Under the pieces are notes generated by a model, which saw nothing but the letters and a program-made list of their open reading frames with translations, was not told the DNA's origin and searched no databases. A program made the translations under genes and the position numbers. Positions 6,221-56,817 of a stretch of DNA of 64,000 bases are shown here, in pieces (the first letter of the stretch is position 1; the number at the start of each line of letters is the position of its first letter). The stretch spans positions 327,554-391,553 of the forward strand of contig NIVC01000990.1 in NCBI GenBank assembly GCA_002269645.1. The letters are read 5' to 3'. Origin of the DNA: Macrostomum lignano. Its lineage: Eukaryota.

Positions 6221-6640
6221 TTGTGTCATCAGGATAGGAGTACTTTGTGTCATCTAAATAAGAGTACATTGTGTCATCTAAATAGAAGTAGATTGTCATC
6301 AGAATAGAAGTACATTGTGTCATCTAAATAGAAGTAGATTGTCATCAGAATAGAAGTACATTGTGTCATCTAAATAGGAGTACATTGTCATCAGAATAGA
6401 AGTACATTGTGTCATCTAAATAGGAGTAGATTGTGTCATCAGAATAGAAGTACATTGTGTCATCTAAATAGGAGTAGATTGTCATCAGAATAGAAGTACA
6501 TTGTGTCATCTAAATAGGAGTAGATTGTCATCAGAATAGAAGTACATTGTGTCATCTAAATAGGAGTAGATTGTGTCATCAGAATAGGAGTACATTGTGT
6601 CTCCTATAGGTCATCTAAATAGGAGTAGATTGTCAGAATA
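6221..6640. repeat. 46-bp dimeric minisatellite (24-bp + 22-bp GTCATC-led subunits)
   Basis: GTCATCAGAATAGAAGTACATTGT alternates with GTCATCTAAATAG(A/G)AGTAGATT; period of 46 measured from 6301 to 6347. Confidence 0.9.
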
Positions 6641-7049
6641 TAAGAGGAGCACGACTAAAGTGCTTTCGAGGCGTCCCTGGGCATCCTGCATGATCACAAG
6701 TCCAGGGCACCGGAAGGACTAGAATGATGAATAGATCGAGCTCGACTGAGTTGCTTGCTATGTCTGTCTTGAAGACAAGAGACACTAATTGCATTGCATG
6801 AGATGCATTGCTTTACTCGTAATTAGACCTGCTAGACTCGCCCCAAATTTTGTTTTGTTATTGTCCCCGGGGGCAGCAGCAGCTTCAAATATGCGAGCAA
6901 CTAGTTGGTTTGCTTAAAAGAAACCAAATTCGCAATCTACGGCTCGTACTTTTAAACAGGGCTGTTTTGCTAACCTACCATTTGTGTGCCAGTTAGTTTG
7001 CAGGGCGTCAAATAAAACTCCAACTCCGTTAGCCTTGAGCACACAGATA

Positions 7050-7195
7050 TAAGTACATGTACGCAGGCACGCTCTATCGATGGATGTACAGCCGTCCTGA
7101 CTCTCCTATCGTCAGGCAGTGTACACTCTCTATGCCTCGGGCGGGCTGGCCAACATGGAATGGAATTGTGCAACGAACCCCGGGCCAAATTATTG
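7050..7195 (-). mobile_element. Old, diverged fragment of the tRNA-derived SINE (body region)
   Basis: Aligns by eye to the reverse complement of 23800-23940 (TGTACAGC..TATCGTCAGGCA.TGTACACT..TGCCT..TGGCCA..AATTGT). Confidence 0.6.
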
Positions 7196-7945: not shown

Positions 7946-7989
7946 TGCTGCCCCAGAGTCGTGGCGCCGAGAAAAGGCCTTTAGCAAAC

Positions 7990-8655
7990 AACTTACCAAA
8001 GTGCTTTGCAAATCTTCTGATGCTAGGAGTTCCTCTTGAGATTCTCGACGGCGACGCTGGAAACATCCCGTCTGCCTGGATCTCTGCTATCCTCAACAGC
8101 TGCCAGGAGCTGGTCGGTGACAAGAAGATCTACGTTATCTCCGTGCTCGGTCTGCAGAGCTCAGGCAAGTCCACTCTGCTCAACACCATGTTCGGACTGA
8201 AGTTCGCAGTGAGCGCAGGTCGCTGCACTCGAGGCGCATTTCTGCAGCTGGTTCCGGTGGAGTCGGGAATGCCGTTCGACTATGTCGCTGTGCTCGACAC
8301 CGAGGGTCTTAGAGCTCCGGAGCTGGGTCTGGACAAGCATCACCATGACAACGAGCTGGCTACACTGGTCCTCGGACTGGGCGACGTGACCATCATCAAC
8401 ATCAAAGGAGAGAACGCTGCGGAGATGAATGAGATTCTGCAGGTTGCGATTCACGCCTTCATCAGGATGAAAATGGCAAAGAAAGATCGAGATCTGCACA
8501 GACACTGCATCTTCATACACCAGAATGTAGCAGCGGCTGGAGCAAAAGAGATGATGCAGGAAGCGACATTTTGTAACTTTGTAACGCTCTACCTTTTGCT
8601 GAATATGCCCGCACTCTTTATAAAGTGTAGTTACAGTTGCAATACCATGTTTTAG
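7990..8655 (+). pseudogene. Partial VLIG paralog containing the G-domain core (8026-8570, about 96% identical to 13411-13955), open reading frame
   Basis: GLQSSGKS (P-loop), AGRCTRG, DTEG and HQNV are all present with no stop or indel. Homology ends abruptly at 8570. Confidence 0.85.
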
Positions 8656-8914
8656 TTCTGATGCCAGCTATTGAAAAGTTTATGTATCTGTTTATTTGGT
8701 TTTATTTATTTCTTCGTATTCCTTTAATTATGAATTACGTAAGGCACAGTGTATAATAGTTTTCTTGAAAGCAGTTTATTCGCTATGGATATAAATTTAT
8801 CAAAATTTAGGTAACAAAGTCCGTGTTTTAATCGATTTTGATGAACCGAAACCATCCCAATATACATTTTCCGTTCCAGCTGTTTAATAGCCTGAAACAA
8901 GTCAAAACAGACAC

Positions 8915-11900
8915 ATGGCGGAGGGGCATCCAAGATGCCCCCGGTGCAGCGAACCGATTCTCCGTGCTGACGCTCAGAACGCAGCCGGCCTGAGCTGGCA
9001 CAAACGCTGCCTGCGGTGCGGTAACGGTAAGTGAACCAACGATCGTGGCAGTCTAACCAGTTACGAGCTAGCTTTCATATCATACCGCACACTTTTGCTT
9101 ACACCTGCATATTCAATGCGCGGCACTTTATAAAAATTCTGAATCTGTAAGAGATCATTGTTTTTGTTTTTTACATTTGGATAGTTACTGACTTCGTAGT
9201 TACGAGGCCCCTATCGCAACCCCAAGGTAAAGGGTGCACTCAGCCCCCGCCAGTAGTCGGCATGTTCGCTGAGGGGGCATCGGCGATATTCATCGAGTCG
9301 GTATCTTGAACGAAGACGAAGAGATCACGGATGTCGACCAGCAAGATTGTCAGCTCGTCCATCCACTGGAGTTTGTCGAGGTGTTTGTACCGCGCCTTAT
9401 TGAAGTAAGGACAGAAGGTGACGTGATGCTCCGCGGTCTCCTCTTCTATGCCACAAAAGACGGTCGGTCTATGCCTTGAGGTCGGTTCTGCTAAGTGAGA
9501 TCAGATAATCTGCAGAGACTTTCCTGTTCTGGTTAGGCATTGTAGACCGGGTCTGCCTGTAGTCGGTGCAACTGTTCCAGTGGAGTTTGTGTTGCTGGTG
9601 GAGCCACCTGGATTTGTGGCCTAGGCTGGGTAGCCTCATCCGATGGTGGTTGCAGTCTTGGTTGCTGCCCTCTTTGGTGAGAGCATCTGCGAGCTCGTTG
9701 CCCAGGATATTGTTGTGACCGGATGTCCAGATGGTACTCGTACTGCAGACTGGCTTTAGTAGAGGTGAGAGAAGGCTTGACCACTACACAGCTTTGAGTG
9801 TCAATATATATTTAGTGATCAATATTTGTGTGGGGTGGGCTTGCGCCGCGCGGGGGGCGGCGGGAAGTCAGCTGTCGGCAGGCGCTTGAGGTTCATGATG
9901 CGGCGCATACCTGCACCTACCGCTGGAACATCAGCTCTGCAGAGGCCCTCCAGTGTTTGTGTGCGGCGTGCTACGGTAGGCCTCCAGCCAGTTTTAGAGT
10001 TGAACCAGTCGGATTTCTCAATGCTCGCGATGCTTTTTGATGGATGGTTGATGCGCTCGATGACTCAATTTGCTGCTGGCTGCTGGTGATGGGCGCTTTT
10101 GTTGCAGAGGAAGTCGTGGTAGGCTTGCGAGCTGAACGGAGGCCCGTTGTCTGAGACGAGCTGCGCTGGTCTGCCGAACGTGGAGAATAGCTTCCTTCCG
10201 TAGCTGCTTTGTGACGGCCTCGGCTGTCATGGACGACATGCGTACTACTATCTGGTAGCGGGAGAAATGGCGAGTAGATGCTTGTTTTGCACTGACCTAG
10301 TGAAGTAGGTTGTTTTTTATGAGGGCGATGGCCCTGGGGGTGTCGTTCACACAATGATACAGAGCCTGATAGCCTGGAGGCTTTCCCTTGGGGTTGTACC
10401 GCTCCTGGATGAGGTAGATGTCAACATCATTGTTGCCAAAGGTGTCTGAAAGGTTTCTAGAAGCTGCGAAAGCGAGGTTCAGGTTGATCTGAATAATGTA
10501 CAGGTAAACTGGTTACTTCGTCGCAGGCGGTTTATTTATCTGGTTGCGTGTGGCAGTGTCACCATTCGGCTGGCCTGCCCCTAGCTTGGCACAAGGTTTG
10601 GAACGGCATGACTCGTCCCCAGAGCGATCCGATCTCGCAAACTCCCCTCGGCGACGATCTCCGGCTGGGCGACGCCTGGGCAGCAGTTGAAAGACAATGC
10701 CGGTGTAGGCAGCAAAATCGCTTTTCTTCAGAGCGTCTTCCCACCCGCGGAGAAACTCTTGTACAGGCCAGGGTTTTGCCAGGGCATCTTTTGACTGAAT
10801 CTACTGAATTCTGTCCTAAGAGGTAGGTCGGGGTTCTTGCTGAGGAGCAGAGCTCGGGTCGCCCCGATGTTTCTTGAGCCACGAGGCTCAACGAGTCAAC
10901 GTTGAGAGGGGCGACTTTATTATCATTAAATATAGTTAATTTAATTTAATTCAAGTCGCTTTCTGGGAATGAAACTTAGCGACTATCTGTAGAAAGTAAA
11001 AAGTGAAAATTGCTTGAAAATTTCCACGAGTACTGTATGTTCTCAAGAAATACAATTAGAAAACAACTGCGTGAATACCTTTTCTGAGAATATACGCTCG
11101 TATCAGCGTATTTACTGCACGACTTGTGCAGAATAGATTCTTAAATTTTATACAGCATGCAAGAGACAGATATTTCCATTGACAATTTTAGATGCAGAAG
11201 TCCGTCTATCAAGTGCTGCATTGAAGGCCAAGGAAATGCTTTCGGAAAAGCATCCTGAATATGCATCCACTGCGTTTCTATACGTTATAGAGTCGTATTT
11301 AAGAAAGAAAAATATTGTTACATTGGACTCATTAGAAGCCATCGACTATGAGCTGATTAGGAAGCTCGCTGGAGATGAGGAAAGCAACCAAGTCTTGACG
11401 GATCTCTTTACTAAGCTGCATAAAATTATTAGGCCAACCAGTTCTGTCGCAGACAGAAAGAAAATGTTTGAGGCAATGACGCAACAAAATTCAAAGAAGC
11501 GATTCAGCACAATAAAGCAATCTGTTCCGGTACAGAAAGAGTTGGGTACATCGTCGACTACTCAACAATCGCTACCGCTATCCCCAAGGCCAGTGTCGAA
11601 GCTTGAACTTCCAGCGCCACCTGTTCCTACTCCTCCAAAAAGACAAGGCTCGATGCCAAATCGACCAAATGTCAACCCGCAGCCAACAACACCACGAGTT
11701 GCAGAACCGAGAAAGCCAATGAATTTTGGATCAGTTCAAGAAACTGTTGAACATCTCGGGTTGAAGTCTTATTATCCAGAGAGAATCTCGCGCAAGGATA
11801 TTCTTTTCGTCAGGAGAAGCCAAGACGAGCGCAGAAATTTGAAGGAAAATTCTGTTGCCTGGCAAGTCATCCGCGCACTCATCAGCTGCGACGCACAGGG

Positions 11901-14900
11901 GAGAAATTTGGTTCCAGAGACGACGGCACCGGCTTTACCGAAAAAAATGTCACTTTTAAACCTCGAGGACGATGATGAAGGCAGCTCTGAGAATGAGCTA
12001 AACCCGATGGATATTTTACTTGCGAGCTACCTCTGCTGTGACAAAGAGGTGCAACAGATGCTCTGCAAAGCTCTGTTTGCTTGCAAGCTGGCTTTCCCAT
12101 TCATCTATTCAACTGTTGGCAAGCCTCTGGTCATGAGCAGCTGGAGCCTGAAAGACATTGTAGTTCAGTTCATAAACGAAAATGGCCAGTACATAGAGAC
12201 CAGCCTGATGACAGATTATCATTTCCCGGTGGTATCATTTGTGAGGATCGGAGATTTGCCTGTGTCGAAGTCCAAGTTGCTGAACTCCCTACTCAATGGC
12301 AGCAGTCATGAGACGTTCTTCCACAGAGACTGCACCAACGGCCACGCGCGCAGAGTCTGCAGCAACGGACTCGTTGAGGCCACCGTGTTTCTGCCGTCCA
12401 GAAACAATAAACTGACTCGAGCCTTCTTGGCAACAAACCTCAGAGGTGACTTGCTGGATTTTCGAGACAAATATCAGGTTTTAACTTCGGCCTCCAAAGT
12501 TTTAGTTGTCTTTGTGGACGTCAGCACCCTTTCACAGCCCGAGTGCTTTAGCCAGCTTCAAAGCATGTCAAAAATGAAGGAATTGGAAGTGATAGTGGTT
12601 CTCTACAAAACTCAAACACTCGCGAATCCGTTAAGTAGCGAGTCGATGAGCATCCTTAAATCATTTTCATGCGTTGATACAAAGAAAGGAAGACCAGAGC
12701 GTGAAATAGTTGGCGAAATCCAACAAAGGCTCTCAGAGTCATTGGCAAAGGACGGTATGGAGCAGAAATCTATCGGAGAAATCAAAGTTGACTTTGATGA
12801 CGGTTCTCTCGTTTCTCAGGCAAGACAGCTTTGCAGCTTCATCTTTGCAGAGGTAACGAAATGCGGAATCATGAACTTAAAGAAGAAGCATCTTCCTCTG
12901 CAAGAAAAATGGATGGACTACAGTCGCCACTACAAAAAAGAAAACTCTTCTAAGGCAACAGATGAAGCAAAGTTAGAAGCTCAGCATCAGCGTTTTAAAG
13001 CCAGACGCCAGCAAATGGGTCTGTGCGATCAACTCAGCCCCATTATGGAGGAGTTTCTTACCACACTGACAAAGATTGCTGACAATGAGCTTCTGGTTAA
13101 GCTTTGGCTTCAGTGTATTCGATCTTTCTTCGACACTTCTAGAGAGCATTTGCCAAAGCTTCAAAAAATGCAGAAGGAATTGCGGCAGCAAAAAGAAACT
13201 GCAGATGAATCATCCCCAACCACGATAGATGATCAGCTCAAAGAACTTGGCCATCAAATACTGCTTGCTTCCATTGGCCTGGAAAACCTATTCAGAGAGG
13301 CGGGCCAAGTCTACGAGGCCAGTTCAGCAGCCTCTTTAGAAAGCACAAAGACTTTCCAAGCGCTTGACATCAATCTGTTTCCACGCGTGATGGCCAAACT
13401 CTTGCTGTGCGGAGTTCCTCTTGAGATTCTCGACGGCGACGCTGGAAACATCCCGTCTGCCTGGATCTCTGCTATCCTCAAGAGCTGCCAGGAGCTGGTC
13501 GGCGACAAGAAGATTTACGTGATCTCCGTGCTCGGTCTGCAGAGCTCAGGCAAGTCCACTCTGCTCAACACCATGTTCGGACTGAAGTTCGCAGTGAGCG
13601 CAAGTCGCTGCACTCGAGGAGCATTTCTGCAGCTGGTTCCGGTGGAGTCAGCAATGCCGTTCGACTATGTCGCTGTGCTCGACACCGAGGGCCTGAGAGC
13701 TCCGGAGTTGGGTCTAGAAAAGTATCACCATGACAACGAGCTGGCTACATTGGTCCTTGGACTTGGCGACGTGACCATCATCAACATCAAAGGAGAGAAC
13801 GCTGCGGAGATGAATGAGATTCTGCAGATTGCGATTCACGCCTTCATCAGGATGAAGATGGGAAACAAAGATCGAGATCTGCACCGACATTGCATCTTCA
13901 TACACCAGAATGTAGCAGCGGCTGGAGCAAAAGAGATGGTGCAGGAAGCGACATTCAAGATACAACAGAAACTCGACAACATGGCGAAGGAGGCGGCTGA
14001 AGAAGAAGGTCTCCATGACGTGAATCGTTTCGGAGACATTTTGCAGTTCAACAGAGACACGGATATTTTCTTTATGTCAGATCTGTTACAAGGCGACCCT
14101 CCCATGGCTCCAGTGAATCCGGGCTACTCCATGGGTGTTCAAGAGGTTAAGCAGCACCTTTTACATATTCTTGATGAAGAACAGAAGCGCTATCTGGGAT
14201 TCAGCGACTTTTCTCATCGAGTAAATGATTTGTGGAAGGCCATACTGTCTGAGGACTTTGTGTTTAGCTTTAAAAGCAGTGTCGAACTCAAAGCTTATAA
14301 CATGATGGAGAATAAATTTCTCGAAGTAAAAAATCACATTGAAGAGTTGAGCGAAGACTGGCTTCATAGATCGGCTGCGATTCCCGTTAGAAAATGCGAA
14401 ATGGTCAGTGCTGTCGCAGATGCGCAGCAGAGGGCGATAAGTGAGCTTCGTGCTATGCTTGAAACTTGGCAGCAGCAAGGTCTGAATTCCTTAAACCTAT
14501 TTTTGGATAAGAACCAGTACAGTGAGTACACCATACAATGGAAGGAGCGAAAGTTAGTGTCCCTAAGGGATTGCATCAAAAGTCTAGAACAGTCACTTCG
14601 GCAGAAACTCCAATTCTTGTGCGATGGGCAAAAAGTTGAGCTTCAGCAAGGTTCACGGACGGAGGAGTGGGAGTCTAAGATCATAAGACGGGCCACCGAA
14701 CTTGCACCCACGCTAAAGAGCAGCTCAACAGAAAAAATTCTGCAGGAATTCGAAGCTCTGTGGCAGGAGTTCGCGCAGCAGCTGCCACCTGAGAGAACAG
14801 TCGACTTCGGAAGTATCGAAAGTCAAGTGGTAGATCAACTGCGAGAGATCTACTATAATGAAAAAAATTATGTGGGCCTATTTTTGGAGCAAATTCCATT

Positions 14901-16482
14901 AAAGAGACAATCAGTGGCTCGAAGTGATAGCTTACCTGAAATACTGTTTCCTAAAGGAGACACTGTTCAGCTCATCATACCAGAACGTTCGAATATCAAA
15001 CAATTAAAAAGTTATGTTTCCAGTAAGCCAGAGAAAGAAGAGCGCAATCTAGTGGTAGACGTTGTATCTGACATTCTCAAGGCAGTTCAAAGTCTTTGTG
15101 AGGATATGAGGGGGGACTTGACAGGAGTTTCTAAGGTTCATGTTAATCGAATACAAAAATACGTGTGTGATGCAGTAAACTCGTCTATCAGAATATCGAG
15201 CAATCATATCCGCACAACGCGTGCATTCGAAATCAAGGTAGTGGTCCTCGCCCTCAGCATTGCATATCCAACATTTGAGCAGATGACGCGGAATTTTTAC
15301 GAAGCCAACAGCATCAAAACAAAGCTGGCCGATACGAAGACAAAGATGTTGAATTTATTTGAAAACATTGTCCGCCGGCAGGCCGAAGCCAAGATTGTGG
15401 CTGATTTCATTCGTGACCATCTGTACTCGGTGATGAAACAGGCTTTCCAGGAAAGAATGGCAGGTAAATTGAGAGGAGTAATGCGGAACGAGATCGGCAG
15501 GACAAAGTACCAGCTCATTGTTCGCATGCTGACCGACATAGCACAGAGACGTGACGCAGAATCGATCCTTCAATACGTGAGAGATTCCCATACTACTGCT
15601 CTGAAATGGCTAACGCAATTCATAAACCGTCAGCTGTTTCAGAGAACACCAGATGGCAATACTGTATTTTCAGGCCATCTCGAGTCATCGCTCATTGCGC
15701 CGATAATTGCGGTGACTGAAGAAGCGGCAAGAGTGGCGGCAACTCGGTGCACCTCGCTGAAAGTTTGGATCGATGAATTCTGTAAAGAAATCAAAAAAGA
15801 GTTCGTTGTGCTTCCTAGACACTTACAGCATGTCTGCACTTACGAATCTACTGTAAAAGTGGAAGACATGCTGAAGCATCTTTTAGGCGGCCTGGGCGAC
15901 CTCAAGTCCACACTAATAAAGCACTTCGCTAGTATGAACGAGTCAACAGTCAGATGGCATGGAGACTCCACTCTCTACTCCGATGTGCTTCAGAGCCTTT
16001 GGGGCTGCAACGAACGCTGCCCTTTCTGTAGCGAGCCGTGCTGCAAGTCTCAGGAAAATCACCACGAAAAAGACGGCAGCCCACATTGCTGCATTCAGCA
16101 CAGACCGCATGGAGTGAATGGTGTTTGTTATATTGGAACTGACCAGTTAAAATTTGAAAACTGCGAATGTCTTACATGTAGCGGTGACAGATTTTCATGT
16201 TGGATTTGCAAGCGAAGGGGTAAGCAGACGCCAAACTGTCGAGGAGACGACAGCGAACAAGAAGTGTATCACCCTTACAAAGAGTACAAAAAGTACTTTC
16301 CAGAGTGGGAGATTGATCCCGACGCAGGAAACGATTCGGCAAAGTTTTGGCACTGGTTCTCGTGGACATTTAAGGACAAGCTGCAGGCTAAGTATCAAAA
16401 AGGAATCGAACAGTTGCCTCCGACCTGGGAACTGGTTTCCAAGAAGGAGGCGATCGACAGCCTGCGCTTCTTGTTGGATTGA
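8915..16482 (+). CDS. Very large inducible GTPase (VLIG/GVIN1-URGCP family) with a predicted LIM-type N-terminal exon; exons 8915-9026 and 11156-16482 (about 1812 aa)
   Basis: The 1767-aa ORF has the URGCP-like SFVRIG..SKSKLLN..HETFFHR block, [37 protein letters not shown] and the Cys/His-rich tail [25 protein letters not shown]. The ORF has no proper ATG start. The acceptor TTTTATACAG at 11155 is phase-compatible with the LIM exon donor GTAAGT at 9027. The family call is high confidence; the splice is inferred. Confidence 0.85.
9250..10890 (-). mobile_element. Internally deleted RNase H-bearing non-LTR retrotransposon (LOA/R1/I-like) inside the LIM-VLIG intron
   Basis: Minus-strand translation gives the APE N-terminus [26 protein letters not shown] (about 10290-10505), RNase [22 protein letters not shown] (about 9670-9735), [10 protein letters not shown], and the C-terminal knuckle [17 protein letters not shown] (about 9410-9460). 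No RT core was seen; stops and frameshifts are present. Confidence 0.75.
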
Positions 16483-18524: not shown

Positions 18525-21150
18525 CAAATCTGCCTAAAAACCCAGCAGTTTCTACGCGTTATGTAGTGTAAAGCATTGGCCAAGCGATGCTCCAATGGTC
18601 AAGAAAAACTCTACCAAAAGGCCAATTAATCCTCCTTCTGTTTTTAATGGAGTTCCTAGCTCGTGTTTTGTTCAGAACCAAGGTACGTAACTTAAAGATT
18701 GCTCAACACTTAGCGTCTATATCGATTTTGCCGCTCACAATTATCTTACTTTTATTTTTACTCTTATTTTAGACCAAGACAGACAGGCCGAAAAGCGCGG
18801 TGTTCTTTCTGACGCGAGGTGCAGCGACATTGATGAGATGGACGCTTTTCAGCTGCTTGATTTTTTGCCGGCATGGGAAAGTTTTCGAGCTGAGGTGAAA
18901 AATTCGGATGTCGTATCTCGACATGCACTGAACACAGCTGTTCTGAACGAGACGTTTACTTGTTTACGTTAGATAAAGATGGAGACCTGTCTGCTCGAAT
19001 TTTTGTCTCACCCAACTTTCTGATTCGTGCATTCAAACTGTATACACCGATTTCGGTTCGAGACTTGTTGGGATTTCAACCGACACTCAAGCGCTGGTCG
19101 CAACTGGATGCTGTTGTCGTGCGGTGCAAAAATTCCGACGCCAATCCCCAACGTGAAGTCGACGTGTTTGTTAGTAGAATCAGTGATGATATAGATTCTG
19201 ACTCTGATTTGGATCCGTCGCTTCAGTTTTTGATTCGACAACTTAGCCTTACATTAGTAAATCGGAACAATCGCCGCTATGACATTTCACTAGTGCGACA
19301 GTCAGCATTGCTCTACTTGATCAGTAGTTCGGCTTACTCTTACCTACGGAAGCTATTGCCATTGCCTCATCCCCGAACGCTGCAGCTGCAACTAGCAGGT
19401 ACAGGAGAAGTTGGCACAGAAACCGACGCAGCCGATGTGATCCAGTCAGTTTTTGCTAGTCTATCAGGAGCTCAGCGAAACTGCGTAATATGTTTGACGA
19501 AATGTACATACAACCGTCCGTTCGATATCGATGCCGTCACCTGGGTCGAGCCGTCGACGATCCGGACCAGGTTGCTAGGACAATTTTGGCCATAATGGTG
19601 AAGCCATTACTTGGTGGAAAACCGTTTGTAGTCCGACTATTGCCGACATACATTTTGTCTGCGGAGTTTCTGCGAAAATGCGTCAGCCAATGTATTAAAG
19701 CAATTAACAACAACGGTGGCCGTGTCGTTGCTCTCGTCAGCGACAATCACCCGACCAACCGCAAGTGTTTTGCTTTATTTAGCGATGGAAGAGAGAAGCC
19801 ATGGATTGGAACGGATGCTGCACAGGAGTCGGAATTCTTCATGCTGTTCGATTTCGTTCACATTATCAAATGCATTCGCAACAATTGGCAAATGGAAGCG
19901 AATGGAATTCTAAGCATTCAACCTCCTGGCGCTGACAGACAGATATCCGCTAAATGGTCAGACATGGTACGCCTGTACCAAATGGAGAAAGACCACGTAG
20001 TCAAGCGCACATGTCTAACTCATGAGGCCTGTTATCCCACAAGCACTCAGAAAACTAAAGTCAGTCTCGCTCTCCAAGTTCTCGATGAAAGGGTTGCCGC
20101 TGCATTGAAGTGTGATGGATACTCAGACACTGCGGAATTTATCAAAACCATAGTGAGATTCTGGAAAATTGTCAATTGTAAAAATCCTGATCTACACGCA
20201 CGACTACGGGATCCGGACAGGCGACCAGTCTATTCCGTTCAAGATGAAAGCATACAATTTCTTAGCGCGCTCGCGGATTCGTTTGATACGACACATTGTG
20301 GAAAAGGCCGAGCTCGCCATCATTCATTGACGCCCGAGACCAAGTCAGCGCTAGTAAACTCACTGCGCGGAGCCTGTGAGATGTGTGAGGTTCTTTTGTC
20401 CGACCCACGAATCAGCTACGTTCTGCTGGCTGGCTGGCGTATATCGCCAAATGAGCGGCGGCAACTACTATGTATCTGTGGAGCAAGTGCTGCTCAGTGC
20501 TCGACTCCGACGAATGAAATTATTGGCATCCCTTGAATTAGCAGACTACAAGCACGATCGGAGCAAATGTTGCAATGAACAGCTGAATGAAATTGAACTG
20601 GCGACCATTGATAATTGTGCTGCTAAATCAGAGGAGCTTTCCATTTCGGAGATGGCTTCGCTCTACTATATCGCAGGTAAGCTGGATATTAATTAAAATT
20701 TAATTCACAACGAGGTTTTACACAATCTCATAAAAACAATTCAAACCGTGCTTAATTGGAAATTGACAGGTTATACAGCGACTAAAGAAGGCAGGCATCA
20801 TAGGAACAGATTTGATATCAGAGACGAGCATTCCAGCCAGCGAATTCACTGAAGAGTTATCTCGCGGAAAGCTTTGTCATCCTCCACAATGGCTGTTAGA
20901 CTTATCCTGTCTCTGCTACAGCAGTTTTATTCTGCACTCTCGTACGTGCGCAACTCGCGTGCAGAAGCTGTTTTATGTTATTAAGGACTTTTACTTTCCA
21001 ACTAAGACACAGTTCAGCATGGACAGTGTCCCGTCGGCTAGCCAACGTTTTTTTCAAAGGACTAGTAAGACGCTCGTCAAAACTCCCACCAATACCGACG
21101 ACATCCCATGATAGAAAGCTTCGGAAGTTAGATGCTCAGTAGGTGAAGTT
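18525..21150 (+). mobile_element. THAP-domain P-element (THAP9-like) transposase relic with introns and frameshifts
   Basis: THAP remnant C.VKHWP..RPINPPSVF; SAYSYLRKLLPLPHPRTL; FDEMYI; VVALVSDNHPTNRK; LFDFVHIIKCIRNNW; KVSLALQV. Short GT-AG introns at about 18682-18771 and 20677-20770. No TIRs were found. Confidence 0.8.
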
Positions 21151-41760: not shown

Positions 41761-44700
41761 ATGCAGCCAGTCTCTACCAATGCCAATGGCAGTCCAGAGC
41801 AGACCAAGCAGAAGTCGCAGCACGAGCGAGTTGCAATCCTTGACGCTGGAGCCCAATTTGGCAAAGTGATTGACAGGCGAATTAGGGAACTATGTGTCCT
41901 TAGCGAACTGTTGCCCATGGAAACCACGGTGGAGCAGCTCAAGTCTGCTGGCTATCGAGCTATTGTTATCTCTGGCGGTCCCGGATCGGTGAATGCACCG
42001 GATGCACCGGCGTATGATCAGCGTTTGTTTGACTGCGGCTTGCCAGTGCTGGGCATTTGCTATGGCATGCAGCTGCTTAATAAGTGGGTTTGCGCTGTCT
42101 GTGGCAATGGGATGGCTCTGACCTTGTTTGTCCTGTCTTCTGTCTTTTGTCATCCAGCTTCTGTGCTTCATCTGTCACCTGGTGTCTGTGCCTCATCTGT
42201 CACCCAGCCTCTGTGCTTCATCTGTCACCCAGCCTCTGTGCTTCATCTGTCACCCAGCCTCTGTGCTGCATCTGTCACCCAGCCTCTGTGCTTCATCCGT
42301 CACCTAGTGTCGGCTTCATCTATCACCTAGTGTCTGTGCTTCATCTGTCACCCAGCTTCTGTGCTTCATCTGTCACCCAGACTCTGCTTCGTCTGTCATC
42401 CAGATTCTGTGCTTCATCTGTCACCCCGCCTCAGTGCTTCATCTGTCACCCAGCCTCTGTGCTTCATCTGTCACCCAGCCTCTGTGCTTCATCCGTCACC
42501 TAGTGTCGACTTCATCTATAACCTAGTGTCTGTGCTTCATCTGTCACCCAGCTTCTGTGCTTCATCTGTCACCCAGACTCTGCTTCGTCTGTCATCCAGA
42601 TTCTGTGCTTCATCTGTCACCCCGCCTCAGTGCTTCATCTGTCACCCAGCCTCTGTGCTTCATCTGTCACCCAGCTTCTATGCTTCATCTGTCACCCAGC
42701 CTCTGTGCTTCATCTGTCACCCAGCCTCTGCTTCATCCGTCACCTAGTGTCGGCTTCATCTATCACCTAGTGTCTGTGCTTCATCTGTCACCCAGCTTCT
42801 GTGCTTCATCTGTCACCCAGCCTCTGTGCTTCATCTGTCACCCAGCCTCTGTGCTTCATCTGTCACCCAGCCTCTGTGCTGCATCTGTCACCCAGCCTCT
42901 GTGCTTCATCCGTCACCTAGTGTCGGCTTCATCTATCACCTAGTGTCTGTGCTTCATCTGTCACCCAGCTTCTGTGCTTCATCTGTCACCCAGACTCTGC
43001 TTCGTCTGTCATCCAGATTCTGTGCTTCATCTGTCACCCAGCTTCTGTGCCTCATCTGTCACCCAGCTTCTGTGCTTCATCTGTCACCCCGCCTTAGTGC
43101 TTCATCTGTCACCCAGCCTCTGTGCTTCATGTCACCTAGCTTCTCAGCGCTTCATCTGTCACCCAGCCTCTGTGCTTCATGTCACCTAGCTTCTCAGCGC
43201 TTCATCTGTCACCTAGTGTCCGTGCTTCATCTGTCACCCAGCATCAGTGCTTCATCTGTCACCCAGTGCCTGTGCCTCATCTGGCACCCAGCTTCTCAGC
43301 GCTTCTACTATCCAATGTTTAACTCTAATTTATATTTTAGGAAACAAGCTGTGATTTTTTGCATAATTAAATAGCCATAAATAATTTCGCCGCTCCATCA
43401 GACACCTTGGAGGCGAAGTGTCGCTCGCGGGCTCCCGCGAAGACGGCCAGTTCTCCGTCCAGTTGGAGACGTCCTGCCGTCTGTTCCGCGGCATGCAGGC
43501 CAGCGAAGACGCGCTGCTCACCCACGGCGATCACGTCAGCCGTGTGGCGCCCGGACTGGACGTTATCGCCCGATCCGACGGCATGGTGGTTGCCATAGCA
43601 ACTAAAGAATCGTCCGGCCGCCGGCTGTACGGCGTCCAGTTCCATCCGGAAGTGGATTTGACGCCCAATGGCGGTTGCGTGTTTCGGAATTTCCTTTTTG
43701 ACATCGCCGGGCTGAAGGGCGACTATCGAATGGCCGAGCGGGAGAGCTCCTGCCTCAGGTTGGTGCTGAAGCTTGCACACTAGGATCCCGCACTGCCTAA
43801 GCTTTTCAGGTTTTTGTTGTTATCAGAGTTGAGTTCTGTGGATTATAAGGATTGATATCTAGGAATACGAGTATTTGGGATTCTAGGAGTTATACTACAT
43901 TGAAATCCCATTTTAGGGATAGCTCATAGAAATCCCACTCTAGGGATCAGAGCCCATAAAAATCCATGCTAAGGATTATAGGCCGCTGAAAATCCCATTA
44001 TAGGGATCAAATAGCCCATGCAAATCCCACTCTAGGTATCATAGCTCATAGAAATCCCATTATAGGGATCATAGCCGGTAGATATCCCATTCTAGGGATC
44101 ATAGCCAATAAATATCCCATTCTAGGGATCAAAGCCGGTAGATATCCCATTCTAGGGATCATAGCCAATAAATATCCCATTCTAGGGATCAAAGCCGGTA
44201 GATATCCCATTCTAGGGATCATAGCCAATAAATATCCCATTCTAGGGATCAAAGCCGTTAGATATCCCATTCTGCAGGTAGTTAATTTCCTAGCCTGAAA
44301 CCCCCCAACCCACAGCTACATCCGCGAGTCCGTGCCCTCGGACTGCCGAGTCCTGATGCTCCTTAGCGGCGGCGTTGACAGCAGCACCTGCGCCGCTTTG
44401 CTGGCCAAAGCCCTCAGGCCCGACCAGATTGTTGCTGTGCACATTGACAATGGATTTATGCGCTTGCGCGAGAGCAGCCTTGTGATTAAGAGCTTAGCGG
44501 CGCTTGGATTGCAGGTCTGTTGTAGCTGGGGGGTTCTACACGCGTCTAAGGGATTGCATTGCATGTGGTTTCTTTATCATTAGCTCTTTATTCCACAGTC
44601 TTCTAGGTGCCTATGCACGCAAATAAGGGATTTTTATCCCCATCCTGAGAAATAGTCATATCATCAGTAGGGATTTTTATCCCCATCCTGAGAAATAGTC

Positions 44701-47679
44701 ATATCATCAGTAGGGATTTTTATCCCCATCCTGAGAAATAGTCATATCATCAGTAGGGATTTTTATCCCCATCCTGAGAAATAGTCATATCATCAGTAGG
44801 GATTTTTATCCCCATCCTGAGAAATAGTCATATCATCAGTAGGGATTTTTATCCCCATTCTGAGGAGCAGGCATCAATAAGGGATTTTATCCCCATTTTT
44901 AGGAGTAGCCGAGTAGGTATCAATGGAGGATTTTTATTCCCATACCGAGAAGTAGACATCAATAAGGGATTTTTATCCCTTATTAGTGTTAACGCAGCCG
45001 TAGAAAAATGTCTAACTCTAGGCATTCATAGTCCCTATAAAAATAGCAACCAACCTAGATTAAAATAATGCTACATACTACTTTTGCTTTTATAATAATT
45101 AGTGTAGTAGAATCTATCAGTTTTCTAAGATGTTTTCAATTGCTCTTCTTTCGGTTGTGAAGGTTCGCCTAATCGACGCCTCGCTGAAGTTCCTGGCCGG
45201 CTGCACTACCCAGCTGCGCCGGGTCACAGTCGGCAAGGAGACGGCCGAGCGCCGCGTCCGGCTCGGCCCCCTGTCCGGCGTCATTCACCCCGAGGAGAAG
45301 CGCCAGATTATTGGCGATCTGTTTATGCTGGTTGCCAAGGACGTTGTTGCCGAGCTGCAGCTGGACCCCGACAAGGTCTACCTGGCCCAGGGCACCCTGC
45401 GGCCCGACCTCATCGAGTCCGCCTCCACCATCGCCTCTCATCGGGCCGACGCCATCAAGACTCATCACAATGACACCGATCTGGTGCGCGAACTGCGCGC
45501 TAGAGGCCGCGTCATCGAACCGTTGAAGGATTTTCACAAGGATGAGGTGCCAGTCTTATGTAATATCCCTGATGTATTAGCCCACCTCTGTTTCACTTCT
45601 GCTAAGCATCTCTGCTTTATCTGTCGCCCAGCATCTGTGCTTCATCTATGGCCCAGCCTCTCCGTGCTTCATCTGTCGCCCAGCATCTGTGCTTCATCTA
45701 TGGCCCAGCCTCTCCGTGCTTCATCTGTCACACAGCTTCTCTGCTTCACCTGTCACACAGCTTCTCTGCTTCATCCGTCACTCAGTTTCTGTGCTTCATC
45801 TATCACACAGCCTCTCTGCTTCATTCAATCGCCCAGCCTCCCTGTGCTTCATCTGTCACATAGCTTCTCTTCTTCATCCGTCACTCAGTATCTGTGCTTC
45901 ATCTGTCACACAGCTTCTCTGCTTCATCCGTCACTCAGTATCTGTACTTTATCTGCCACGAAGATTCTCTGCTTCATCCATCGCTCAGCATCAGTGCTTC
46001 ATCCATAGCCCAGCCTCTCATATACTCGCAAACCATTCCAGGTGCGCACAATCGCCCGCGATCTGGGCCTCCCGGACGCCCTGGTGTCGCGGCACCCGTT
46101 CCCCGGGCCGGGTCTAGCAATCCGAGTCCTGTGCGCCAGGGAGCCCCACATGGACAAGGACTTCATGGAGACCGCCGCAGCGGTTCGCCTGCTGCTCGAC
46201 CTGCGCAATTCTGCGCCAGCAATCGGCGCCGGCGAACGTCAGGCGCCTCAACTGTCGCGTCTACGCCAGCTGCTCACCGCCAGTGAAATTGATCAGCTCA
46301 GTCGGCTGTCCGACATTCAGGGCCATCTGTTGCCGGTGAACACTGTGGGAGTGCAGGGCGACAGGCGCACCTATTCTTACGCTGTGGCCCTGTCCAGCTC
46401 GAGTCCCGAGCCCAATTGGCCTGATCTGTTCTACATTGCTCGCCTATTGCCCAGAGTCTGTCACAGCGTTAACCGGGTTGTGTACGCCTTTGGCCCGGCC
46501 ATACAGTATCCCGTGACCGATGTCACCCAGACTCTGCTGTCACCACCTGTGCTGGACCAGCTCAGAATAGCTGACGATAAGGCGCATTCCGTGCTTAGGG
46601 TGAGCGATTACCTGTGGGCTGGTTGGTTGGGTGATCGAATTTTCACGGGTTGATTTGGTGTGTTCACGGGTTGGATGAATGTACTCACGGTTTAGTGTGT
46701 TCACGAGTTGGTGTGTTCACGAGTTGGATAAGTGTGTTCACAGGTTGCTTTGGTGTGTTCACGGGTTGGATGAATGTGCTCACGGTTTAGTGTGTTCACG
46801 AGTTGGTGTGTTCACGGGTTGGATAAGTGTGTTCACAGGTTGATTTTGTGTGTTCACAGGTTGCTTTGGTGTGTTCACGAGTTGGATAAGTGTGTTCACG
46901 GGTTGGTGTGTTCACGGGTTGGATGAGTGTGTTCACAGGTTGCTTTGGTGTGTTCACGGGTTGGATGAATGTGTTCACGGTTTAGTGTGTTCACGAGTTG
47001 GTGTGTTCACGGGTTGGATAGGTGTGTTCACAGGTTGATTTTGTGTGTTCACAAGTTGCTCTGGTGTGTTCACTGGTTGGATAAGTGTGTTCACGGGTTG
47101 GATGGGTGTGTTCACGGGTTGGATGGGTGTGTTCACGGGTTGGATGGGTGTGTTCACGGGTTAGATGGGTGTGTTCACAGTTTGGATGGGTGTGTTCACG
47201 AGTTGGATGGTTGTGTTCACGGGTTGGATGGGTGTGTTCACGGGTTGGATGGGTATGTTCACGAATTTTCTAGAATGATTATGTGTCACGGGTTAAATGC
47301 ATGCGTTCACGCGAATTCATAAATCAGATCTTTTGCAGTCTTTCACTGGTTTACGCTAAATTTACCTGATAAATAATCCTCTCTTTGAACACAATTCCAG
47401 GAGTGCCCGAACAGCTGCATCAGCCAGATGCCGGTAGTCCTAATCCCCATTCACTTCGATCGCGATCCTCTGCTGCTGTTGCCCTCCGTACTCCGGTCAG
47501 TCGTGCTCAGGCCATTCGTCACCAACGATTTTATGACCGGCTTGGCCGCAGTTCCCGGCCGTCACCTGGCCCTGAGCACCCTGGCCAGCATGGTAGCTCA
47601 AGTGGCCAGCGTGCACGGCATCAGCCGGGTTCTGTACGACCTCACCTCCAAGCCGCCTGGCACTACTGAATGGGAGTAG
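41761..47679 (+). CDS. GMPS: GMP synthase (glutamine-hydrolysing), 6 exons: 41761-42083, 43402-43758, 44316-44514, 45163-45546, 46042-46599, 47401-47679 (699 aa)
   Basis: [87 protein letters not shown]. All introns are GT-AG with matching phases; total 2100 nt. Confidence 0.97.
42150..43300. repeat. 25-bp minisatellite (CTTCATCTGTCACCCAGCCTCTGTG) with higher-order blocks, GMPS intron 1
   Basis: Period of 25 measured; variant blocks recur at about 42383, 42580 and 42997. Confidence 0.95.
43900..44275. repeat. 30-bp minisatellite (ATCCCATTCTAGGGATCATAGCC...) with a 60-bp dimer, GMPS intron 2
   Basis: Alternating -GGTAGAT / -AATAAAT units. Confidence 0.9.
44625..44980. repeat. 43-bp minisatellite (AGGGATTTTTATCCCCATCCTGAGAAATAGTCATATCATCAGT), GMPS intron 3
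   Basis: About 5 near-perfect copies plus degenerate 3' copies. Confidence 0.92.
45580..46020. repeat. 25-bp minisatellite of the same family as in GMPS intron 1, more diverged, GMPS intron 4
   Basis: CTTCATCTGTCACACAGCTTCTCTG-type units. Confidence 0.9.
46625..47290. repeat. About 15-21-bp GTGTTCACGGGTTGG-type minisatellite, GMPS intron 5
   Basis: GTGTTCAC recurs throughout; regular 20-bp units at 47085-47265. Confidence 0.92.
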
Positions 47680-50274: not shown

Positions 50275-51585
50275 CGAGGGTCACTCAGAAAGTCTTTAGC
50301 CTGAGTAGGATCCACGAGACGTAGAAGCATGAAATTTGTCTATGGTAAAGACCAACTTTTAAAAGTATCGCAGCAAAAATTTCAAACAGAAGCAGCCACT
50401 TTTGAGTCCACTGCAGCGAGTTAAAGTCAGTTCACCCCCCTGAGATCTTCAATTCAACAATGAAGCTGGAAAATCGCGACTTCAGAGCAATGATGTACCT
50501 GCACTTCAAGCAAGGCAAGTCGCCGGCCGAATCGTATCAAACTTTACAGAACGTTTTCACCCATGTATGTCCTTCATACGCAACCGTCAAAAACTGGTTC
50601 GCTGAGTTTCGCCGAGGTCGAGAAAGCCTCGAAGATGAACATCGATCCGGGAGACCCTGTGACGCAGTGACTCCAGAAAATATCTGCGCTGTGTCCAGCA
50701 TGATTGCCGCTGACCGGCGAGTGACCTACCAGCAGATCCAGCAGGAGATCGGTATTGGATCGGGGAGTGTGCACGCCATTATGCACGAACACCTTGGAGT
50801 GCGGAAGCTGGCTTCCCGGTGGATCCCCCATCAGCTGTCGGACGTGCAGAAGGACACCAGGGTGGCTTGGTGCCGATTCATGCTGCAGAAATTCGAATCC
50901 GGGACCAGCCGGCGTATCTGGGACATCCTCACGGGCGATGAGACCTGGATTTATCAATACGACCCCGAAAGCAAGCGCCAGTCAGCCATGTGGACCTTTG
51001 GAGACGAGGACAGCCCCACCAAGTTTCGACGCAGCCGGAGTGTCGGCAAGCAGATGGTGGCTTGTTTCTTCATGCGCACTGGGCATGTGGCTTCCGTTTC
51101 ACTTGAAGATCGCCAGACAGTCACCACTGACTGGTACACAACGGTTTGCCTGCCCAAGGTCTTTTCTGCTGTGAGCCAGAGGCGCCCAAGGTGCGGAATG
51201 CGTGGGGTGCTTCTGCACCACGACAACGCCAGCGCGCACACGGCGGCTCAAACTCTGGAGTTTCTGGCTGACTGTGGGGTCCAGCTGATGACTCACCCTG
51301 CTTACAGTCCAGACCTGGCACCGTGCGACTTTTTTCTGTTTCCGAAGTGCAAGGAGATTCTGAAGGGCCAGGTCTTTTCTTCACCGGAAGAAGCTGTGAA
51401 TGAGTTTAAAAACATCATCGAGGAGCTCCGGGATGAGGATTGGCGGCAGTGCTTCGACAGCTGGTTTCACAGGATGCAAGCCTGTATCAATGCCGGTGGA
51501 GAGTATTTTGAGCACTTGTAGTCATTTTTTAGTTCATTTGTTGCTGTTTTCGTGTTCAAGCTAAGAACTTTCTGAGTGACCCTCG
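50275..51585 (+). mobile_element. Complete mariner (DD34D) transposon, 1311 bp
   Basis: TIRs CGAGGGTCACTCAGAAAGT (19 bp perfect, extending with mismatches); TA duplications at 50273-50274 and 51586-51587. Confidence 0.97.
50460..51521 (+). CDS. Mariner transposase, 353 aa, intact
   Basis: HTH N-terminus, WIPHQL, TGDETW, HHDNASAH and YSPDLAPCD with 34 residues between the second and third Asp. Confidence 0.97.
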   Translation: MKLENRDFRAMMYLHFKQGKSPAESYQTLQNVFTHVCPSYATVKNWFAEFRRGRESLEDEHRSGRPCDAVTPENICAVSSMIAADRRVTYQQIQQEIGIGSGSVHAIMHEHLGVRKLASRWIPHQLSDVQKDTRVAWCRFMLQKFESGTSRRIWDILTGDETWIYQYDPESKRQSAMWTFGDEDSPTKFRRSRSVGKQMVACFFMRTGHVASVSLEDRQTVTTDWYTTVCLPKVFSAVSQRRPRCGMRGVLLHHDNASAHTAAQTLEFLADCGVQLMTHPAYSPDLAPCDFFLFPKCKEILKGQVFSSPEEAVNEFKNIIEELRDEDWRQCFDSWFHRMQACINAGGEYFEHL

Positions 51586-55696: not shown

Positions 55697-56817
55697 ACTC
55701 AATTGTGTCTGCCATCGGAATGGCAGGACGGACTACAGCATCCCGCAGCTGTCTTCATCTGAGCTCGAATCGCTTGCCGACCGGCTCATCGCCGAGAATT
55801 CGCCACTGTTGGTCTTCGGCTACGCCTCGGTGGTGTGGAATCAGGGATTCCCGGTCCGCGGCAGGATTGTCGGGTCGGTCGATGGGTTCAAGCGGCGGTT
55901 CTACCAGGGCAACGTGAGCCACCGGGGCAGGCCGGGCAGGGTGAGCACTGCATGTTCTCTGCATGCTACTCACAACTTTAATTCAGTAGCTAGACGAAAA
56001 TATCTATTCTTTAAATAATGCTTTGCCGATATGTATCGAAAAGATTGTTACTTACGATTGTTTTGCATTCTGAATGCAGTATATGATACTTGCAACCATT
56101 GACAGACGCTGTCGATATGTATCGAAAATAATCAAACTATATCCTTCTATATGTATCTATATATCGAAGCATATCTAGAACCGACCAAAATAGGTTTTAA
56201 GAGTTAAAGTTTGGTGCCGATATGTATCGAAACTAATTTTCTCCGGAGGCTCGACTCATGCTAGTCTCAATAAAATATTTTCTGTAATTAAGCATCGTCG
56301 CCGATATGTATCGAAACTCGCGTTACTGACGCTCGACCCGCAGCCCGGCAGGGTCGCCACGCTGGTGCCGTGCGAGGGTGCCACGGTCTGGGGCACGGCC
56401 TTCGAGGTTGTCGGCGCCGAGGCGATCCGAGCCGCCGTCGCCCACCTCACGCAGCGAGAGGTGCGGCTGGGCGGCTACGTTTGCGTCCGGGTCCGGTTTC
56501 GGCCGCTGCATTCGGCCAGCAGCCGGGAGGCCTTCGCGTTCGTCGCCCTGCCGGACAACCCGCAGTACCTCGGCAAGGAAAGCCTCGAGCGGCAGGCGCG
56601 CCAGATGGCGCTCGCCGCCGGCCCGAGTGGCGCCAATGCCGACTACCTGCGCGGCGTCGCCCAATTCATGCTCAGCGAGGTGCCCGACGCCGAGGCCCGC
56701 GACCCGCACCTGTTCCGCCTGCTGCGCCGCATGGAGGCCGAGTTGGCGAAGGCGGCTTGCACTGAGCGACATGGCCGGCCTCCAGAACTCGACACCTGGT
56801 GCACGGGAAGTGCTTGA
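55697..56817 (+). CDS. CHAC1: ChaC-family glutathione-specific gamma-glutamylcyclotransferase; exons about 55697-55940 and 56344-56817; start not resolved
   Basis: VFGYASVVW..GFKRRFYQGNVSHRGRPGR|PGRVATL..WGTAF..HLTQREVRLGGY..NPQYLG..GPSGANADYL. Donor GTGAGC at 55941, acceptor CCGCAG ending at 56343, phase 0. ChaC1 versus ChaC2 assignment is tentative. Confidence 0.9.
55985..56320. repeat. Dispersed short repeats (GCCGATATGTATCGAAA, about 5 copies) in the ChaC intron
   Basis: Copies at about 56027, 56113, 56217 and 56300, plus partial ones. Confidence 0.75.

Follow-up and report, generated by a model that had tools for sequence, protein, structure and literature searches.

A half-LIM exon joined to a giant VLIG/GVIN GTPase gene in the flatworm Macrostomum lignano

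Among immune dynamin-like GTPases, the very large inducible GTPases (VLIG/GVIN proteins) form the class that is least understood, and the first mechanistic work on them concerns human GVIN1, which coats Burkholderia in the cytosol and prevents the formation of actin tails (bioRxiv 10.1101/2025.03.24.645074). A gene of this type is found at positions 8915–16482 of a 64,000-nucleotide stretch of the Macrostomum lignano genome (contig NIVC01000990.1, positions 327,554 to 391,553; the whole stretch is termed the window here). It is already annotated as BOX15_Mlig026403g5, encoding a hypothetical protein (PAA73854.1), and its short first coding exon specifies the first half of a LIM domain. The gene is probably a two-coding-exon descendant of a LIM-VLIG fusion gene whose middle exon has been lost, the half-LIM that remains being mainly a vestigial leader.

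Vertebrate VLIG/GVIN proteins (mouse VLIG-1/Gvin1, human GVIN1 and URGCP) and the protein described here share a Pfam core (PF25496/PF25683/PF26772) and are large proteins encoded mostly by one exon. The window protein differs in its N-terminus, where the half LIM is followed by a helical stretch unmatched in Pfam and by a PxxP-rich linker. Interferons are a vertebrate innovation, and the flatworm protein could not be interferon-induced in the vertebrate sense.

The LIM fold is formed by two packed zinc fingers and needs both. FHL ('four and a half LIM') proteins have, at the N-terminus, one zinc finger of LIM origin; this half-LIM is the second (C-terminal) finger and is conserved, whereas the window protein keeps the first finger, apparently with relaxed constraint. 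The plant NLR CHS3/DAR4 is an immune nucleotide-binding protein with an accessory LIM domain, but provides a lead only: it is a TIR-NLR from another kingdom with the LIM at its C-terminus, the window protein is a dynamin-like GTPase with its LIM sequence at the N-terminus, and a decoy role here would be an analogy only. Closest at the sequence level are the CRP/CRIP-class LIM proteins (CSRP1/CRP1, CRIP1). The best alignment of exon 1 is with CRP1 LIM2 and extends from the first cysteine through H-x2-C-x2-C, and the full LIM of a paralog has the class-typical ...FC-x2-CY-x-KFG tail. Unlike these small adaptors, the window protein has finger 1 only, has no glycine-rich repeat and is fused to a GTPase; PAA61198.1-type paralogs also depart from the class in having C-x4-C, not C-x2-C, between ligands 5 and 6.

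The annotated gene and its LIM-bearing paralogs

Joining of positions 8915–9026 to 11192–16482 gives a product of 1800 amino acids that, by exact protein look-up, is PAA73854.1 (UniRef100_A0A267FKY6). The gene span of PAA73854.1 corresponds to window 8915–16482, and its locus record (NIVC01000990.1:326468-354035) is identical to the window across the 26,482 bases compared. The Mlig_3_7 annotation is a genome-guided transcriptome, assembled with StringTie and TACO and then processed with TBONE, which splits transcripts where spliced-leader and poly(A) sites have been mapped; open reading frames (ORFs) were called by TransDecoder (PMC5730564). As the models are transcriptome-derived, the join between exon 1 and the VLIG exon has indirect transcript support. 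Two further loci were compared with the window: a sister locus (L002, on NIVC01001902.1), with the protein PAA62763.1 (P0001), and a paralogous locus (L001, on NIVC01002061.1), with PAA61198.1 (P0002, Mlig019641g2) and an upstream tandem VLIG, g1 (P0003).

An initial annotation made from the sequence alone had proposed that a LIM-type exon is spliced onto a VLIG giant GTPase. This is borne out by the exact GenBank model PAA73854.1 and by PAA61198.1, which has a complete LIM together with URGCP and URGCP_GTPase domains. A LIM-VLIG fusion exists in M. lignano, and it represents an undescribed architecture, though one present in public records. As the initial annotation had supposed, no paper pairing 'very large inducible GTPase' with 'LIM domain' was found in the searched literature, and no description of the architecture was found in the literature on VLIGs and domain-architecture evolution, where most subscription journals lay outside the searched library.

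The reading of exon 1 (ATG at 8915, 37 codons, a phase-1 end and the donor GTAAGT at 9027) is confirmed in both sequence and translation. Its peptide has the form C-x2-C-x17-H-x2-C-x2-C, with C8, C11, H29 and C32 as the finger-1 ligands and C35 as the first ligand of an absent finger 2. The Pfam LIM model (PF00412) gives the annotated product 23.5 bits, a marginal pass of the gathering cutoff of 22.9, over profile positions 1–30 of 58. The LIM start proposed for this exon is therefore real by the gathering score and by the ligand pattern, but covers only the first half of the profile. Its CRP/CRIP-like character also stands, the best solved-structure match of the peptide being CRP1 LIM2. Set against the eight-ligand pattern of a two-finger LIM (C-x2-C-x16-23-H-x2-C-x2-C-x2-C-x16-21-C-x2-(C/H/D)), the product has five ligands (C8/C11/H29/C32/C35), and profile positions 31–58 are absent. 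Finger 2 is missing altogether, i.e. the protein has half a LIM rather than a degenerate whole one; the second finger had been called degenerate, whereas the exon for it is simply missing in this copy. A C2HC knuckle on its own is unlikely to work as a LIM adaptor, both fingers being required for the LIM fold. With respect to sequences farther upstream, the acceptor ending at 8879 that had been assigned to this exon is conserved in neither related locus, an in-frame TAG is found at 8888, 5′ of the ATG, and nothing supports a further upstream coding exon.

What is missing from the window is present in the paralogous locus. In PAA61198.1 the Pfam LIM match extends over the full profile (1–58 of 58, 34.3 bits), ahead of the URGCP/URGCP_GTPase body, and the coding exons in L001 are at 10035–10157 (beginning with the ATG), 10364–10513 and 12310 onward. 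The exon 1 donor, GTAAGTGAACC, is identical to that of the window, and in alignment the phase-1 GTAAGT donor and the flanks of LIM exon 1 are identical in all three loci. The middle exon is 150 nucleotides (nt) in length and of phase 1-1, and encodes GECNAQLQVTKLFVAQGDIFCERCYSAKFGNKIGLKRTTAADVKRVNFQA, which comprises finger 2 and a linker. As this exon is symmetric, its skipping keeps the frame. PAA61198.1 and the window protein have 85–88% protein identity, a homologous exon 1 and the same URGCP, URGCP_GTPase and GVIN1_C body. They differ in the 150-nt exon, which the window gene lacks, and in a 34-amino-acid IIRPTSS...KQSVP segment, which is present in the window protein and absent from PAA61198.1; in addition, the upstream tandem VLIG is intact beside PAA61198.1, with only a fragment of it in the window.

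A second, more distant copy (UniParc UPI0007A154EE, P0020) also has both LIM fingers, including the finger-2 exon sequence. Since PAA61198.1 and this copy both have two fingers, the full LIM is the ancestral state. UPI0007A154EE is a 3625-amino-acid model in which a full LIM-VLIG is run together with a VLIG upstream of it and with an unrelated extracellular protein; the initiator methionine of its LIM exon is an isoleucine (KHIEDGHPR). It is probably an over-merged prediction, and raises the question of read-through between tandem VLIGs. In precomputed annotation only PAA61198.1 trips the Pfam LIM model. The search for LIM-VLIG proteins outside Macrostomum covered the best 150 representatives matching the paralog LIM N-terminus, rather than being an exhaustive architecture search, and among these only UPI0007A154EE combines LIM and VLIG. 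Other long matches (P0025, P0081 and P0105) were rejected as LIM-VLIG candidates, as they are not VLIGs. Word-indexed searches with the N-terminal region alone gave no matches, not even the 93%-identical PAA62763.1; the index is too sparse for this result to carry weight.

The finger-2 exon was sought in the window by tblastn, with human CRIP1 and CSRP1 and with the paralog N-terminus, and by regular expressions; none was found above chance in the 64 kb. Within the window intron, the paralog exon 2 gives a Smith-Waterman score of 25, compared with a mean of 19.8 and a maximum of 30 for shuffled sequences, and the ORFs found there have no Pfam match. The 150-nt exon is absent from the sister locus as well. 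DNA homology between the window and L001 (blastn) extends over 8686–9170 and resumes only at 11141, with ~2 kb of unrelated sequence between; no further copies of the replaced intron interior are present within the window or the compared loci. Splicing of 9026 to a different exon with a complete finger 2, which had been raised against the fusion, finds no such exon in the 64-kb window, and the annotated coding sequence joins exon 1 to the VLIG. Whether paralogs share exon 1 had also been posed as a question: homologous exons are present in both L001 and L002, but the sister-locus model PAA62763.1 omits it.

The exon structure, the homology and the loss of one exon relative to the paralog are established by these comparisons, and the window gene belongs, in truncated form, to a small group of Macrostomum LIM-VLIG genes. 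Its proposed ancestor is a Macrostomum LIM-VLIG fusion with three coding exons, for finger 1, for finger 2 with a short linker (150 nt, phase 1-1) and for the VLIG body. On the branch leading to the window and the sister locus, a ~2-kb stretch with the middle exon would have been lost or replaced, and exon 1 would then have been spliced in frame to the VLIG exon at the TAG acceptor also used by the paralog. The remaining half-LIM, one C2HC zinc knuckle, would serve mainly as a start codon and 5′ exon and not as a LIM adaptor. By homology, PAA73854.1 may act through its GTPase body like other VLIG/GVIN proteins, i.e. by nucleotide-dependent self-assembly in cell-autonomous defence.

The splice junction and transcripts without exon 1

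The annotated acceptor is the TAG at 11189–11191, with the exon beginning at 11192, 36 nt downstream of the CAG that ends at 11155. It was at this CAG (11153–11155) that the initial annotation had placed the join. The CAG is present and in frame in the window, but it is not the joining site of the annotated product: the 1812-amino-acid product of a 9026/11156 join is absent from the protein collection, as is the product read from an in-frame ATG at 11236, whereas the 9026/11192 join gives exactly PAA73854.1. Both acceptors are conserved in a three-way alignment of the window, L002 and L001. They are separated by 35 nt in the window but by 34 nt in the other two loci, and the upstream acceptor is therefore in frame only in the window, by way of a 1-nt insertion. 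The annotated coding sequence of L001 enters the VLIG exon at the TAG homologous to that of the window, in near-identical context; this acceptor, caattttAG, is common to the window and PAA61198.1 and is entered in phase 1. The 5′-partial model of the sister locus begins at the first full codon past the homologous TAG acceptor (L002 position 10001, homologous to window 11194). The VLIG exon had been thought to supply the next LIM cysteine. That cysteine is encoded within the 36 nt of 11156–11191, which are out of frame in both related loci, and the 12 codons concerned, including the supposed sixth LIM cysteine, are most likely intron sequence that happens to be open; the frame of the long VLIG ORF is open from a TAG at 11134. 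It is possible that the first AG is skipped owing to a branch-point-like TTAAC, CTCAAC or CTTAAA ~11–13 nt upstream of it.

The same short region contains an ATG, in the context acagcATGc (window 11157–11159; L002 ~9962; L001 ~12276), that is in the VLIG frame in L002 and L001 (MPIRNFHLTILDVEE...) and is put out of frame in the window by the 1-nt insertion. In the L002 and L001 copies, translation of unspliced transcripts could start from it.

Three other accounts of the transcript have to be weighed. That exon 1 is joined at 11155, so that the VLIG exon provides the sixth cysteine of a degenerate finger 2, would raise the LIM score to 26.9 bits (profile 1–36 of 58, same cutoff); the acceptor in question, ttttatacAG, is conserved across the three loci and keeps the frame in the window, and in M. 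lignano no cis-acceptor motif is commoner than CAG (PMC8629364). The account is nevertheless very improbable, given the missing 1812-amino-acid product, the out-of-frame position of the CAG in both related loci, the use of the downstream TAG by the paralog transcript model, and the true finger 2 of the paralogs, which is a separate exon with no similarity to CKRQIF.... A different view is that the main mRNA has no exon 1, the VLIG exon being trans-spliced to the spliced leader (SL; CGGTCTCTTACTGCGAAGACTCAATTTATTGCATG in M. lignano, PMC8629364) at TAG 11191 and translated from ATG 11236, with the LIM exon as an outron relic. The long ORF had been described as having no ATG of its own, but the in-frame ATG at 11236 would serve. 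SL trans-splicing affects ~30% of M. lignano genes (PMC8629364), TBONE cuts at mapped SL sites (PMC5730564), and PAA62763.1, a 'partial' model from the sister locus (95% identical), starts precisely with the first complete codon past the homologous acceptor, the pattern expected of a transcript boundary at an SL trans-splice site. On the other hand, the annotated coding sequence of the window is itself complete and includes exon 1, and an upstream cis donor, here GTAAG at 9027, normally favours cis-splicing (a principle given in PMC8629364). It should be pointed out too that the SL ends in an ATG, which is out of frame here and would open an upstream ORF of ~11 codons before ATG 11236. As a description of the main mRNA this view is doubtful, though an exon-1-less isoform is plausible in light of the sister-locus model and the prevalence of SL trans-splicing. 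The last account, a nested arrangement in which the LIM exon is part of a distinct CRP/CRIP-like gene with its other exons elsewhere and the VLIG in its intron, takes up the similarity of the exon to CRP-family LIMs and can practically be dismissed. It was rejected, being effectively refuted by the paralog, whose single coding sequence runs from the two LIM exons straight into the VLIG exon, by the annotated coding sequence of the window, which links exon 1 to the VLIG, and by the absence of a finger-2 or glycine-rich CRP exon from the 64-kb window.

Constraint on the half-LIM

The VLIG exon is under purifying selection, with ratios of nonsynonymous to synonymous substitution (dN/dS) of 0.33 relative to L002 and 0.28 relative to L001. 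Exon 1 gives 0.73, 0.76 and 1.0 in the three comparisons, from few sites; between the window and L002 there are 5 nonsynonymous and 2 synonymous changes. At the nucleotide level these two loci diverge more in exon 1 (6.3%) than in the VLIG exon (4.0%) or the intron (2.7%). In exon 1 of L002, Cys35 is changed to Arg and an Arg within the CxxC to Trp, and the LIM score of 13.2 bits is below the Pfam cutoff. Half-LIM copies also carry F to L, E to D and K to L changes at sites conserved between CRP1 and the full-LIM copies. The half-LIM appears vestigial and is probably decaying. The initial annotation had suggested that it may be an integrated sensor or decoy or a cytoskeleton-targeting module, and the lack of any sign of purifying selection on exon 1 argues against each of these in this gene. 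Possibly the decoy or actin-targeting idea, if applicable at all, fits the full-LIM paralogs better.

Alternatively, the half-LIM might be functional, with the N-terminal C2HC zinc knuckle acting as a targeting, interaction or regulatory module that, for example, competes with full-LIM paralogs for a partner. The exon is part of an annotated complete coding sequence, it still passes the Pfam LIM cutoff at 23.5 bits, and both half-LIM loci retain C8, C11, H29, C32, the ATG and the donor. This is unlikely, however, for a two-finger fold of which profile positions 31–58 are absent and an exon with dN/dS of ~0.7–1.0; the F to L, E to D and K to L changes, the sister copy with no C35, an R to W change in its CxxC and 13.2 bits, and the omission of the exon from the sister-locus model point the same way. 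More improbable still is a broader scheme, in which a Macrostomum-specific giant VLIG/GVIN family uses its CRP-type LIM to target the GTPase to actin or adhesion structures, or to bait a pathogen effector, with the half-LIM copies as regulated or dominant-negative forms and not products of decay.

The interpretation of PAA73854.1 as a fusion gene with a lost exon and a mainly vestigial leader also has points that weigh against it. The evidence for the splice junction is a deposited model derived from transcriptome data, and with VLIG copies 88–95% identical to one another, reads can multi-map among them. The sister-locus model omits exon 1, and 5′ structure may vary between copies or isoforms. 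The four zinc ligands of finger 1, kept with the ATG and donor in both half-LIM loci, are compatible with residual function. The substitutions are very few: a Fisher test of exon 1 against the VLIG exon gives p=0.47, and a Poisson test p=0.01–0.1 depending on the reference dN. The exon 1 data are thus absence of evidence for constraint and not proof of decay. AlphaFold2 modelling, from alignments that are too shallow, gave a mean pLDDT (predicted local distance difference test score) of 48.8 for the window N-terminus and 42.0 for the full-LIM paralog N-terminus.

The VLIG body, its surroundings and the significance of the locus

The identification of the long ORF ending at 16482 as a VLIG is secure, with strong Pfam matches to both URGCP and URGCP_GTPase (Table 1), and the PxxP-rich linker noted at the outset is likewise present. 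All the VLIG/GVIN family features looked for are found, i.e. the GTPase domain, the URGCP domain, GVIN1_C and the G1 and G3 motifs. The full ORF is most similar to PAA62763.1 (93% identity) and PAA61198.1 (88%), followed by sea-urchin, fish, bird and frog proteins named 'interferon-induced very large GTPase 1-like' at 26–34%.

Table 1. Positions of the gene parts and of the adjoining VLIG remnant, numbered from the first base of the window
Feature	Position	Strand	Remarks
Dead fragment of a second VLIG GTPase domain	7967..8655	+	ORF 8020–8655; URGCP_GTPase positions 154–333 of 396; nucleotide identity to L001
Coding exon 1	8915..9026	+	ATG, 37 codons + 1 base (phase 1); start of annotated coding sequence of PAA73854.1
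Intron, 2165 nt	9027..11191	+	donor GTAAGT at 9027; interior 9171–11140 unrelated to paralog introns
Acceptor CAG proposed earlier (11153–11155) + 36 nt	11153..11191	+	most likely intronic; acceptor used is TAG 11189–11191
Coding exon 2, VLIG/GVIN body	11192..16482	+	1762 codons + stop
Helical N-terminal region	first part of exon 2	+	no Pfam match
First in-frame ATG in VLIG exon (MLSEKHPEY...)	11236..11238	+	possible start for transcripts without exon 1, e.g. SL trans-spliced
PxxP-rich linker	~11575–11720	+	8 overlapping PxxP motifs, residues 166–213
URGCP domain	~11998–12753	+	PF25496, 170.5 bits (cutoff 27)
URGCP_GTPase domain	~12937–14130	+	PF25683, 369.5 bits (cutoff 55), profile 8–396 of 396
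P-loop GLQSSGKS	13534 (residue 819)	+	intact motif
DTEG (G3 DxxG)	13681 (residue 868)	+	intact motif
C-terminal Cys-rich GVIN1_C region	from ~16000	+	precomputed PF26772 on exact product and closest homologs

The precomputed Pfam list of one VLIG-like bird protein (P0012, from Chiroxiphia lanceolata) includes MACPF (PF01823), which points either to a further VLIG accessory domain or to a gene model that has been merged. As other VLIG accessory domains exist (e.g. MACPF), a new N-terminal module is not surprising in itself.

Within the VLIG exon, the segment at window ~14790–15690 (codons ~1200–1500) has a synonymous divergence (dS) of 0.11 to L001 and 0.235 to L002. The rest of the exon shows the reverse, with dS ~0.05 to L002 and 0.17–0.20 to L001. 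The reversal suggests gene conversion between VLIG paralogs.

The VLIG fragment at 7967–8655 has 93–97% nucleotide identity to the L001 VLIGs. It is what remains of g1, the upstream tandem VLIG still intact in L001, and it is also found in L002, at 6559–7103. Downstream of the gene, P-element/THAP9-like transposase ORFs at 18960–20536 (+) contain Tnp_P_element helix-turn-helix (HTH), TNP-like RNase H N-terminal and GTP-binding insertion domains, and from 18568 onward the window is 99.6% identical to L002. GMP synthase-like exons are present at 41761–46653 (+), with a class I GATase from 41761 and GMP_synt_C from 46042, and are split by long tandem repeats that are open as ORFs (~42100–43400 and ~45600–46000). 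An uninterrupted ORF of 353 amino acids at 50460–51521 (+) encodes a mariner/Mos1-type transposase (HTH_48, Transposase_1, DDE_3). A ChaC-like (gamma-glutamylcyclotransferase) ORF at 56365–56817 (+) is followed, up to 59454, by a tandem repeat of ~2.5 kb that is open in two frames (PHIDSH.../THRFSSP...) and has a strong negative GC skew.

Taken alone, the window gene adds little: GenBank already lists its product as hypothetical, and what it keeps of the LIM is a truncated piece, probably in decay. In practical terms, the locus shows that existing records conceal the LIM-VLIG architecture. A natural fusion of a cytoskeleton-type LIM adaptor with a VLIG, in a flatworm in which transgenesis can be performed, would give a handle on VLIG targeting, and the full-LIM and half-LIM paralogs side by side would make a ready comparison.

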